A stretch of 63,359 nucleotides of DNA, counting the filler, from Octopus bimaculoides (taxonomy: Eukaryota): NCBI RefSeq assembly GCF_001194135.2. It is 8 parts of 7 records of this genome, joined end to end, with 100 filler letters (N's around TTAATTAATTAA, not from the genome) between each part and the next. Parts side by side here need not be neighbours in the genome. Positions count along the whole stretch, not along the records: positions 46,827 to 50,210 come from NC_069004.1; 7 more parts are not named here. One strand, 5' to 3'. This document shows, in pieces, positions 46,827 through 50,210 of this stretch. Position numbers and translations under genes: made by a program. The number at the start of each line of letters is the position of its first letter. The first letter of the stretch is position 1. Below the pieces are notes generated by a model. It was given only the letters and a program-made list of their open reading frames with translations, was not told the origin of the DNA and did no database searches.

Positions 46827-47680
46827 ATATTCGTCCAGGAATATGCAAACAAACCAAAGTTTATTGCCCAGACAGCCGGTGATAAGAATAGCCGTTTCCA
46901 CGGTACATTTTTAACTGCATTTTCACATTTTATTGTCTTTTTTAAGTACGAACGTTCTTCTTCACTAATAGTGGGGTGGACGTCTGGATTATCATAAACA
47001 ACATAAAACCACACACAACTAAACATGAATGATATTCCACCAAATACATAGAATATGGAACCCCATCCGTTATCAAATCCATAAACACAGAGGTAACCTG
47101 ATATTGAAAGACCTACAATACTTCCAAGGAGTTGACCTGCAAATGAAAACCCTATCAATATACCTATCTCTTGTGGAGGTCCCCAACGTCCAAATAAGGA
47201 CTGAATTGCTGGAGGCAACAGCCCCGATACTGCTCCTGTCAATATCCTTAGAACAAGCGTAATGTATCCACTAATCCGAGATAAACTTGGGTGAAGAATG
47301 GCCAGAATGGATGCTGAGAGAAGTGAAGCTCCCAGAACTCTTTTCCCACCATATTTATCTGCCAATATGCCGCCCAAAACAGTCACCATATACCCATAGA
47401 AGTACCCAGCCAACATATTGGATTGTAGTGAGTTGCTCCATTCAAACTCTCCTTCAAACGTTTGGTTCGTTGAATGATTCTCTAAACCTGAACAATGTTG
47501 ATCGTTTGTAGTATTGTTAACTTCCTCAGTTGTACGATTGGGTGTTTTCAACATGCATACAAAAGCCATACTTAGATCAACTCTTAAAGTTTGAAGCAGA
47601 AGAAAAGCCATACCACAAGCATAGCATAATCTCCATCGACACGAATAATAACGCTTCAGTTCGTTGGTAAATTTCGACAT
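46827..47680 (-). CDS. SLC17A5-like: Sialin-like SLC17 / anion:cation symporter (MFS) transporter, N-terminal 284 aa; partial, runs into an assembly gap
   Basis: Stop-free non-repetitive frame from ATG at 47680 (MSKFT..). Family motifs: LRVDLSMAFVCM (TM1), N-sequon-rich lumenal loop, FEWS...Q..MLAGYFYGY, GGILADKYGGKRV, LRILTG, RWGPPQE, GWGSIFYVFG, YDNPDVHPTISEEERSYL, VPWKRLFLSPAVWAI. Leu at the VGLUT H128 position and Tyr at the VGLUT R322 position point to a sialin-type rather than VGLUT-type protein. Orthology is not established; the frame is also open upstream to the gap at 47781, so the true start may differ. Confidence 0.9.
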
Positions 47681-47881
47681 TATTGCGTTTCTTTTTACTG
47701 TTTCTTCATAAAGTTGTGCTTGATGTTTGGTGTCCGAAGGTATATTAGTCCATGTGCATTGTAAGTCCAAAATGTTTAAAGNNNNNNNNNNNNNNNNNNN
47801 NNNNNNNNNNNNNNNNNNNNNNNNNNNNNNNNNNNNNNNNNNNNNNNNNNNNNNNNNNNNNNNNNNNNNNNNNNNNNNNNN

Positions 47882-48148
47882 CTGCAACACCAAGGCCGAG
47901 CTGGTGACCAAGATCAATAATGTATTTGAAGATCTTCCTAGAGACACAATGAGGAACGCATACACCATGTTCCGGAGCTCTGTTGAGGCTGTTACGAAAG
48001 CTAATAAAGGCTAACTTTTAATAAAATGTTATTTCTCAGCCATTATCTAGTTGATATTTTTTATATTTTTTAAATTACTGTTATTTTTGGATTGGATATT
48101 GTATTTTCTTGTCCTTTATGCAAAGCGTCAAATTTAATCTGAACACCG
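47882..48148 (+). mobile_element. Tc1/mariner-superfamily element, 3' end (transposase C-terminus plus TIR)
   Basis: CNTKAELVTKINNVFEDLPRDTMRNAYTMFRSSVEAVTKANKG* resembles the ...L...I...F..L.....C..F..R.EAV..A.GG C-terminus; ends aatttaatctgaacaccg-TA. Confidence 0.65.
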
Positions 48149-48695
48149 TATATGCGCATGTGCAAGTCAGTATACATAATGCCTTATCTAATTAGGTATT
48201 TTTATGATTTAGGCTGAATGAAAATAATGTAACAGACGACTGATTCCCCAGTATAATTATATGTATAATTTATTCCTTTACATGTGTTCACAAAGAATAT
48301 TCTTAGTTTTCAAGTAACTTTAGGATCATATATTTCTTGACACTGTAGATTTATTACATATACACAATATAATTGAAGAAGACAGCGTTTCATAATTTTT
48401 GACGAAGTCTACCACAAACTTGGTATTCCAAGGATTACTGAACGGCAGCAATTAAATCGTGTGCAATTATGTCGCCAGAGGATTCACATGACATGAAGGC
48501 AGTCATGGCAGAGTGAAAGGAACGAAATATAGGAGAGAATTTGTTCAGATTCCGTTGCAGGCTGACATAAGAGCGACTACCTGTTTTATTGTGTATGAGG
48601 AGCTAGGACAGACATGAGGAAGATGACAAAGAAACGGTAAGTAAAAAAAAGAGGAACAAACCCACACGCACACACGCTCACGCACACTGAAACAC

Positions 48696-48768
<73 letters not shown>

Positions 48769-49103
48769 GTAACAACAAAAGAATGAGACCTCGATATCAG
48801 ATAAATAGAAGATTATTTATATNNNNNNNNNNNNNNNNNNNNNNNNNNNNNNNNNNNNNNNNNNNNNNNNNNNNNNNNNNNNNNNNNNNNNNNNNNNNNN
48901 NNNNNNNNNNNNNNNNNNNNNNNNNNNNNNNNNNNNNNNNNNNNNNNNNNNNNNNNNNNNNNNNNNNNNNNNNNNNNNNNNNNNNNNNNNNNNNNNNNNN
49001 NNNNNNNNNNNNNNNNNNNNNNNNNNNNNNNNNNNNNNNNNNNNNNNNNNNNNNNNNNNNNNNNNNNNNNNNNNNNNNNNNNNNNNNNNNNNNNNNNNNN
49101 NNN

Positions 49104-49139
<36 letters not shown>

Positions 49140-50177
49140 TTAATAATAGTTTCCAGTGATAACAATTATCCCTTCGAGTATATCAGCCAGAAAAATTCGC
49201 GATGTACCAAGTGCGTGATAGGGGAACCGCTATATGGTGAGGGATTACTCTATAATGTATTTATTCTCAAGATATTATAACGTAAATTTATACGCTTGTA
49301 ATATATTTCATATTTGATGCTTCATTATACAAAGTTGTTTTTCTTCTTGTTTTCGTTTGTTTTTATTGCCGTTTAGCGTTATGTAATCCGTACAACGCCT
49401 GGCCGGCGACCGACTTCGTTCGAACTATGATCACCCCTTGTTCGATAATATTCAATGTATCTATTGCATTTGGTGTAACTAGCACTTAATGATCCGGTAA
49501 GACAAAATACGATTTTTAAAAAAAGGCATTTAACTTGCTTATCAACATCATAGCAGAGTAACCTCCAAATACCTTAGGATAAAAAATCTGATATCACCAA
49601 TAACACATTACCAATCTAATAGATTTTGCACACTTCTAACTCGTTTTACAGATGAATGAGAAGAGTTCGGAGGAAAACATAAATATTGACGCTGTAAAGA
49701 CGACACTTATTCACATTTACTGAATCTTTATTATTTTCCCATGTTTACCCCTACCTGATACGTGGCCGATGATAACCGATGTTATGACTGCCTCTATCAT
49801 TTAGTAGTAAATATCTTCATTTCAATCCGTTGAAAATGTATAATTCACTAATTGAGCAAATTACTTAGGACTTCAATGGTAATCGTCACTAATATATTTA
49901 CACGAGTTTTCTAAATGCATTCGGTTCTCTTCATTAAAATTCTTTCGTTCCATAAACGCAGAACAGACCATTAATACAGCGTGTTTGAGTAGCTATATAT
50001 GAATTGTGTATCATATATTTTAATTACTGTTATGATAACAGCATTATGTCTCTGTAGGGTGTGTGAGAGATAGAGATAGAGAGAGAGATAGAGAAAGAGA
50101 ATCTATATACGAATTAATTACACATATATCTGTTAAACTTATGATTTAGTAGTTAGTTTTGCTGTAACGTTACACGC

Positions 50178-50210
<33 letters not shown>

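Follow-up and report, generated by a model that had tools for sequence, protein, structure and literature searches.

An intact, intronless sialin-like SLC17 gene lacking the TM4 glutamates in a tandem array of Octopus bimaculoides

Introduction

A 63,359-nucleotide stretch of DNA from Octopus bimaculoides (NCBI RefSeq assembly GCF_001194135.2), referred to below as the window, carries on the minus strand of its piece 46827-50210 a gene related to human sialin (SLC17A5). Alignment of the predicted protein with sialin and with its own relatives shows that the gene encodes an intact SLC17 carrier scaffold, in which the arginine pair of transmembrane helices (TM) 1 and 4 is kept, the glutamate relay of TM4 is gone, and the pocket is specific to the individual copy. 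The gene is under purifying selection and is not decaying. It is a member of an already reported octopus expansion, since 'sialin' is among the gene-family expansions attributed to Albertin et al. 2015 as cited in PMC6110919 and PMC6062618. By analogy with carriers of the NPT1-4 type, its product may be a pH-independent, potential-driven organic-anion carrier at the cell surface, a reading to which we give a probability of roughly one half.

Family membership and residue equivalences

The piece holds one long minus-strand frame, which stays open between the N gap at 47781 and the edge of the piece at 46827. Its 284-residue product, beginning at the first Met (47680), matches Pfam MFS_1 at 4e-28 and the bacterial transporter DgoT at 6.6e-6. 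The full-length protein, obtained after the repair of a scaffold error described below, matches residues 37-486 of human sialin at E=1e-89, VGLUT2 at 1.6e-69 and VGLUT3 at 1.1e-68 (HMMER). The MFS_1 and sialin matches support the SLC17 sialin-like identity put forward in a preliminary description made from the window sequence. The fold was assessed on the paralogue P0003, which is 84% identical to the window protein. Its AlphaFold2 model, with a predicted local distance difference test (pLDDT) score of 82.8 and a predicted template modelling (pTM) score of 0.82, has 12 TM helices, and its best Foldseek matches are the sialin structures 8u3f and 9ayb, with TM-scores of 0.92-0.94, followed by VGLUT2 with 0.89-0.91. 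Both SLC17 hallmark arginines of TM1 and TM4 (sialin R57/R168, DgoT R47/R126) are present, and the conserved TM4 glutamate (sialin E175, DgoT E133, VGLUT2 E191) is replaced by serine.

Residues were mapped by HMMER alignment to PDB sialin 8dwi_A in native numbering, in which the window protein covers residues 37-304 (E=1.9e-43). Positions 47159-47248 of the minus strand translate to RILTGAVSGLLPPAIQSLFGRWGPPQEIGI, and the alignment places no gap in the TM4-TM5 segment, in agreement with the gapless by-eye alignment made earlier. All residue calls of that alignment are confirmed, namely R57 and R168 kept, and Y54Q, N59D, E171T, E175S, H183Q, R195I and H298L (Table 1). The replacements extend to much of the substrate pathway. 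Sialin has a pocket for N-acetylneuraminic acid, formed by Y54, R57, Y119, H298, Y301, N302, F305, Y306, S411 and N430, and a cytosolic constriction formed by H183, R195, L415 and A422 (PMC9858498); nine of these 14 residues are replaced in the octopus protein (Q54, L298, S302, N305, I306, I411, Q183, I195 and N415), and five are kept (R57, Y119, Y301, N430 and A422).

E171 and E175 are the proposed H+-coupling pair of sialin, and the substitutions E171Q or E175Q each reduce transport by ~95% (PMC9858498). The role that the preliminary description gave to these two glutamates is therefore in line with the literature, and its statement that H183 is essential rests on the pathogenic H183R substitution at the cytosolic constriction rather than on a catalytic role (PMC9858498). 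N59, T153 and R168 line a lumen-accessible tunnel of sialin that ends at E171, and T153 contacts E171 (PMC9858498). The proximity of D59, H153 and T171 in the octopus protein is taken from this published description.

An intact gene split by the assembly

The piece exactly matches positions 8214-11597 of the fetched locus L001 on CM046624.1, the 36.2-Mb O. bimaculoides chromosome record carrying the gene, where it is flanked by N runs of 1994 and 2423 bases. The end of the open reading frame (ORF) at 46827 is an assembly gap with no stop codon there. When the two contigs sharing a 194-base overlap (Table 1) are merged in silico, an uninterrupted single-exon ORF of 486 codons with a terminal stop is obtained. 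One scaffold contig is thus mis-oriented or misplaced, by which a single-exon gene has been split in two, and the truncation in the window is due to this gap and mis-oriented contig rather than to gene decay. The stop-free frame noted at the outset holds both from 47781 to 46827 and in the joined ORF.

Upstream of the MSKF start, the frame is open for 33 codons (47681-47779, minus strand), contains no other Met and runs into the N gap. The MSKF start is probably real, since paralogues begin at the same conserved MSKF/MAKF; a 5' extension with a start codon further upstream may be hidden in the gap. The NCBI model for the locus, P0057 ('sialin-like', 273 residues), fuses a spurious exon to the 3' half of the gene; its exon 1 seems to have been created in annotation by the scaffold error and not to be a true exon of the transporter gene. 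A one-codon deletion is located at ~47380-47382, between the T and V codons of GYMVTVLGG, at the position of sialin Q123, which is Asn in the array. The same deletion is found in the closest O. sinensis protein, P0002, and it is therefore inherited and not damage.

The octopod intronless array

Approximately 44 cluster representatives with 60-84% identity were found in O. bimaculoides, O. sinensis, O. vulgaris and Argonauta hians, and nine fetched loci of these four octopods contain 18 intact full-length single-exon copies of 470-497 codons each. On CM046624.1, where the window gene lies within the octopod-specific array at ~2.47-2.64 Mb, the copies follow one another in tandem at spacings of 2.5-10 kb and span at least 170 kb, together with fragments and at least one true pseudogene. 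The latter is found ~10 kb from the window gene (L001 18554-19909, minus strand); it is missing the TM1 region, has stops before the homology and an internal stop, and is annotated as the 220-residue fragment P0032. NCBI names the array copies 'sialin-like' or 'uncharacterized transporter slc-17.2-like'.

The array has the signature Q54, D59, H153, T171 and S175, all five of which are present in the window copy, and this copy nests inside the array clade in 200/200 bootstraps. R168 is found in 43/43 array sequences, R57 in 31/33, T171 in 42/43, S175 in 40/42, Q54 in 28/30 and D59 in 88%, with H153 as the rule across the array. Q54 is specific to the array and fixed in it, and Q309 is mostly fixed as well. 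Other positions vary from copy to copy, with Q/H/L/Y/F at 183, I/S/N/R/K at 195 and L/H/W/M/F at 298, and some members (P0014, P0024, P0026 and P0031) have N59. The reading that the substitutions are private to this copy is ruled out by the presence of T171/S175 in array members and in the parent gene. The earlier proposal that T, S, Q and I together might define a conserved clade is correct for T171 and S175 and incorrect for Q183 and I195; on the aligned copies, Q183, I195 and L298 characterise this copy and close relatives of it without defining the clade.

A literature search on cephalopod SLC17 and sialin returned nothing at residue level in the papers that could be reached. The signature Q54/D59/H153/T171/S175, the intronless structure, the multi-exon parent and the diversification of the pocket are not described in this literature, to which Albertin et al. 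2015 does not belong.

Selection on the gene and its sites

Pairwise ratios of nonsynonymous to synonymous rates (dN/dS, omega) between the window gene and its neighbours or O. sinensis copies are 0.20-0.30. Changes were also tallied per branch on a neighbour-joining (NJ) tree of the 18 copies, with ancestors reconstructed by parsimony. The terminal branch leading to the window gene has 42.5 synonymous and 34.5 nonsynonymous changes, corresponding to an omega of 0.24 (P=6e-10 versus omega=1). This value and the intact 486-codon ORF bear out the earlier view that the substitutions are not a sign of decay. At codon 171, four synonymous changes and one nonsynonymous change were counted among the 18 copies, and at codon 175 five and none; Thr171 and Ser175 are themselves under selection. 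In the array, codon 59 has undergone three synonymous changes and a single nonsynonymous one.

A different pattern is seen at the 14 pocket and gate sites defined by Hu et al., where 77 nonsynonymous changes were counted; sets of TM sites drawn at random have 37 +/- 10 (P<1e-4). Omega is 0.49 at these pocket and gate sites, 0.30 over all TM sites and 0.16 at the relay sites of the N-domain. These results indicate elevated replacement at the pocket and gate without proving positive selection, which is not claimed here because an omega of 0.49, though elevated, is below 1 and the counting method is crude, scoring nonsynonymous paths at the invariant Arg57 codon owing to CGN/AGR changes.

Origin of the glutamate-less state

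A wider survey drew on 1.84 billion proteins clustered at 50% identity and covered the 150 best-matching representatives, with 157 aligned domains. E171 and E175 occur together in only 22 of these domains, 114 have no acidic residue at either site, and the glutamate at the E175 position is absent in 121, while R168 is found in 153/157 and R57 in 111/123. Rat VGLUT2 has Gln at the position of E171. In this part of the family, as far as it was aligned, the combination of retained arginines and missing glutamates is the common state, and a published remark on the absolute conservation of both residues in SLC17 (PMC9858498) fails to hold, since most of the nearest representatives lack both glutamates. 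Because the serine-bearing octopus copy, NPT1-4 and the 121 domains all do without it, the TM4 glutamate is not family-defining for SLC17 as a whole.

In cephalopods, D59, H153, T171 and S175 are already present in the multi-exon genes P0378, P0380 and P0381 and in two unnamed relatives. P0378, P0380 and P0381 retain Y54, H183, R195, H298, Y301, N302 and Y306. P0381, named 'sialin' by NCBI, is located at L012 3001-22515 on O. bimaculoides CM046603.1 and has at least 10 coding exons over ~20 kb. The nearest non-cephalopod relatives, from bivalves, gastropods and chitons, also lack both glutamates, having L/T, L/S, I/A or A/T at 171/175, but retain both arginines and the canonical pocket residues. 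Outside cephalopods, D59 and H153 are seldom found, D59 occurring in 4/123 other representatives. By these comparisons, cephalopods have replaced the two TM4 carboxylates and acquired, one shell away, a carboxylate together with an imidazole.

NJ trees were bootstrapped 200 times. The array is monophyletic in every replicate (200/200) and, with the multi-exon genes and a second intronless lineage, makes up a cephalopod clade (199/200). The canonical sialins, which range from cnidarians to human, group separately (187/200) to the exclusion of the array, and a derivation of the array from canonical sialin is ruled out by this phylogeny. The statement in the preliminary description that the gene has lost its coupling residues cannot be kept in that form, because the gene lies outside the canonical clade and the nearest molluscan sialin-like genes are already without both glutamates. 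The second intronless lineage (P0074, P0375 and P0376) has S171/S175, G59, Y153 and long acidic N-termini; its locus (L010 10001-11611) comes from contig ctg109893l of the metagenome assembly ENA ERZ21867824, and it groups with the cephalopod genes.

The intronless array probably descends from a gene of the P0381 type. A retrocopy of such a multi-exon cephalopod 'sialin' is its most likely source, as judged from intron loss alone: the array is intronless while P0381 and the Haliotis relative P0048, with 10 coding exons, are multi-exon. Cephalopods may lack a canonical E171/E175 sialin, for which the evidence is weak. A search with the canonical molluscan sialin of Babylonia (P0114), which carries E171/E175, H183/R195 and the sorting motif EKDTLL, found no cephalopod among the best 120 of 1392 matches; these 120, at 50-76% identity, come from gastropods, bivalves, a chiton, a brachiopod, annelids, nemerteans, echinoderms, cnidarians and vertebrates.

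Plausible mechanism and alternative explanations

The proposed course of events would begin with a multi-exon cephalopod 'sialin' that already had T171/S175, D59 and H153, and would proceed through its retrocopy to tandem duplication, after which the residues of the substrate pocket and cytosolic gate would have diversified. The protein would be a 12-helix MFS organic-anion carrier that binds the carboxylate of its substrate through the conserved pair R57 and R168 and that cannot use the Glu171/Glu175 proton relay of sialin. Its mode of operation might resemble that of NPT1-4, in which low pH would not be required, membrane potential would be the driver, and the site of action would be the cell surface rather than lysosomes; each array copy might prefer different anions. 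The cell-surface location is favoured because the array proteins have an N-terminus of only 13 residues, which in the window copy reads MSKFTNELKRYYS and has no [DE]xxxL[LI] dileucine motif. Sialin is sorted to lysosomes via L22/L23, and its L22G/L23G mutant reaches the cell surface (PMC11116495).

Independence from H+ is plausible and unproven. It was one of the possibilities raised in the preliminary description and does not follow from the sequence, because D59 and H153 have been gained at tunnel-lining positions. Several other points also weigh against the potential-driven carrier. Its coupling mode is assigned to array members by analogy only. D59 in TM1 and H153 in TM3 are titratable and conserved, and with them proton sensing may have moved. 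In human embryonic kidney (HEK) cells, the sialin double mutants E171A/E175A and E171Q/E175Q retain partial activity (PMC11116495), indicating that E171/E175 are not the sole determinant and warning against deducing function from residues 171/175 alone. The pocket omega of 0.49 could reflect relaxed constraint instead of adaptive diversification, the contigs were joined in silico only, and the NJ tree groups the parent gene with the second intronless lineage as sister of the array, which is not nested inside the parent.

It is possible, though less probable than the potential-driven carrier, that proton coupling or sensing has been relocated in a DgoT-like manner, with the D59 carboxylate and H153 in place of E171/E175. 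Both residues are conserved in the array as well as in its cephalopod parent, codon 59 has changed mostly synonymously, and the corresponding residues of sialin lie with R168 along the tunnel to E171, as noted above. In DgoT, the residue equivalent to D59, Asn49, is part of a charged pocket buried in the protein, and one of the two proton sites is Asp46 of TM1, adjacent to the conserved arginine (PMC6532931, PMC11649914). The four D59 carriers among the other representatives, as well as molluscan carriers (two chiton proteins and one Lottia protein), are all without both glutamates. However, D59 is three residues away from the position of DgoT Asp46, which corresponds to sialin L56, so that the two are not equivalent, and the site is not uniform, as the four array members with N59 and the sister intronless lineage with G59/Y153 make clear. 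The association between D59 and the loss of the glutamates is non-significant once relatedness is considered, being anecdotal with four carriers. An anion channel or non-transporting sensor, using the arginines as in the chloride conductance of VGLUTs, is unlikely. R168, the equivalent of VGLUT2 R184, is invariant in an intact fold, and replacement of the gate pair H183/R195 by Q/I in the window copy could loosen the constriction (PMC9858498), but purifying selection acts on the entire alternating-access scaffold, including both domains and the conserved glycines and prolines, the gate residues differ from copy to copy instead of being fixed, and no channel-specific feature was found.

Retention of canonical lysosomal export of sialic acid or acidic sugars with H+ is very unlikely. 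R57, S61, Y119, R168, Y301 and N430 are kept, and the result of the search with Babylonia sialin could mean that cephalopods have no other candidate for this role. Against this, both coupling glutamates and the N-terminal dileucine sorting motif are absent, Y54, H298, N302, F305, Y306 and S411 have become Q, L, S, N, I and I, and P0381, with its canonical pocket, is a better cephalopod candidate. Barely credible is a decaying pseudogene copy in the array. The window holds only a truncated ORF, the public model P0057 is a 273-residue fragment, and a genuine pseudogene lies nearby, but the truncation is an assembly gap and the one-codon deletion is common to P0002; we consider decay ruled out by the intact joined ORF of 486 codons together with the terminal-branch omega of 0.24.

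A broader scenario remains doubtful. Cephalopods would have no canonical sialin, their sole gene of the sialin lineage would have a naturally rewired proton relay made up of T171/S175 and of D59/H153, newly gained within one N-domain tunnel, and a retrocopy of it would have seeded the octopod array of ~40 genes, with the relay fixed and the pocket diversifying, as a lineage-specific repertoire for organic anions.

Comparison with known transporters

Human sialin, the lysosomal H+/sialic acid symporter (PDB 8dwi and 8u3d), is the best match of solved structure, with ~34% identity. The two proteins have in common the 12-TM MFS fold and the residues R57, S61, Y119, R168, Y301, A422 and N430. The octopus protein differs in T171/S175, the Q/I gate pair, six pocket replacements, the missing dileucine motif and its place outside the canonical clade, and its gene is intronless. 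The mammalian plasma-membrane organic-anion transporters NPT1-4 (SLC17A1-4), compared by description, are also without the TM4 glutamate and provide the best functional analogy; the octopod clade is, however, not closely related to them, and the glutamate loss appears to be independent, within a lophotrochozoan lineage.

The nearest non-cephalopod relatives are molluscan 'sialin-like' or 'slc-17.2-like' genes (Haliotis P0048, Mytilus P0079 and chiton P0392), with ~40-46% identity and R57/R168 kept. Unlike the array, they are multi-exon and keep Y54, H183, R195, H298, N302 and Y306, and most of them have N59 and T, L or M at 153. DgoT, the D-galactonate/H+ symporter of E. coli, and rat VGLUT2 share with the octopus protein the fold, the TM1/TM4 arginines and a polar pocket in the N-domain, but both keep the TM4 glutamate (E133 and E191, respectively). 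The cephalopod D59 is only a loose analogue of the TM1 acid D46 of DgoT.

Other features of the piece

The remaining features are listed in Table 1 with the coordinates of the gene. A stretch of 318 bases at 47882-48199 recurs inverted, with 92% identity, beside the next paralogue (L001 697-993) and is probably an interspersed repeat. It contains a short ORF tail, CNTKAELVTKINNVFEDLPRDTMRNAYTMFRSSVEAVTKANKG*, at 47883-48014 on the plus strand, which has no Pfam match; we take it to resemble the C-terminus of a Tc1/mariner-type transposase, an assumption to which Pfam gave no support.

Table 1. Coordinates of the gene, its mapped residues and other features in the window (residue numbers of human sialin unless stated)
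Feature	Position	Strand	Remarks
First 284 codons of the intronless sialin-like SLC17 gene, TM1 to start of TM7	46827..47680	-	ATG at 47680-47678; matches Pfam MFS_1 and sialin 8dwi
TM1 motif QTLRVDLS	47570..47593	-	Y54Q, R57 kept, N59D, S61 kept
Y54 to Q (TM1)	47591-47593	-	
R57 kept (TM1)	47582-47584	-	
N59 to D, D35 of window protein (TM1)	47576-47578	-	
His codon at T153 position (TM3)	47291..47293	-	H130 of window protein; titratable, cephalopod-specific
TM4-TM5 segment LRILTGAVSGLLPPAIQSLFGRWGPPQEI	47165..47251	-	R168 kept; E171T, E175S, H183Q, R195I
R168 kept	47246-47248	-	R145 of window protein
E171 to T	47237-47239	-	T148 of window protein
E175 to S	47225-47227	-	S152 of window protein
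H183 to Q	47201-47203	-	Q160 of window protein
R195 to I	47165-47167	-	I172 of window protein
TM7 start LFAYSWTN	46829..46852	-	H298L, Y301 kept, N302S; substrate-pocket positions, variable among array copies
H298 to L (TM7)	46850-46852	-	
194-base repeat, 100% identical, inverted	46827..47020; L001 14021-14214	- (window)	Edge of a separate 911-base contig ~5 kb away, at CM046624.1 ~2,486,359-2,487,269
P0057 exon 1, ATGAGGAAGATGACAAAGAAACG then GTAAGT, MRKMTKKR	48616-48638	+	Spliced onto an internal AG of the transporter ORF
Microsatellite (ATA)23	48696-48765		
Microsatellite (AT)17	49104-49138		
Imperfect AGAGAT-type repeat	50065-50100		
Microsatellite (TG)14	50182-50210		Piece edge, adjoining gap

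Significance

The original observation is sound, and the gene is a mis-annotated member of a published expansion in a known transporter family, to which the signature D59/H153/T171/S175 and the diversification of the pocket are modestly interesting additions. The basic picture of the SLC17 family is unchanged by these findings. With respect to annotation, the scaffold is wrong at this locus, where the real gene encodes an intact transporter of 486 residues in a single exon. SLC17 carriers without the glutamates, which are presumably pH-independent, are common, because in most invertebrate sialin-like proteins the arginine pair is kept and neither glutamate is present. If the doubtful scenario of a diversified array were true, octopods would have a repertoire of carriers for, for example, excretion, xenobiotic handling or chemosensory tissues. 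The occurrence of T171/S175 together with D59/H153 in cephalopods is a natural experiment on the movability of the proton site in this fold, and the octopod array, with ~40 natural pocket variants on one scaffold, is useful for addressing substrate specificity.

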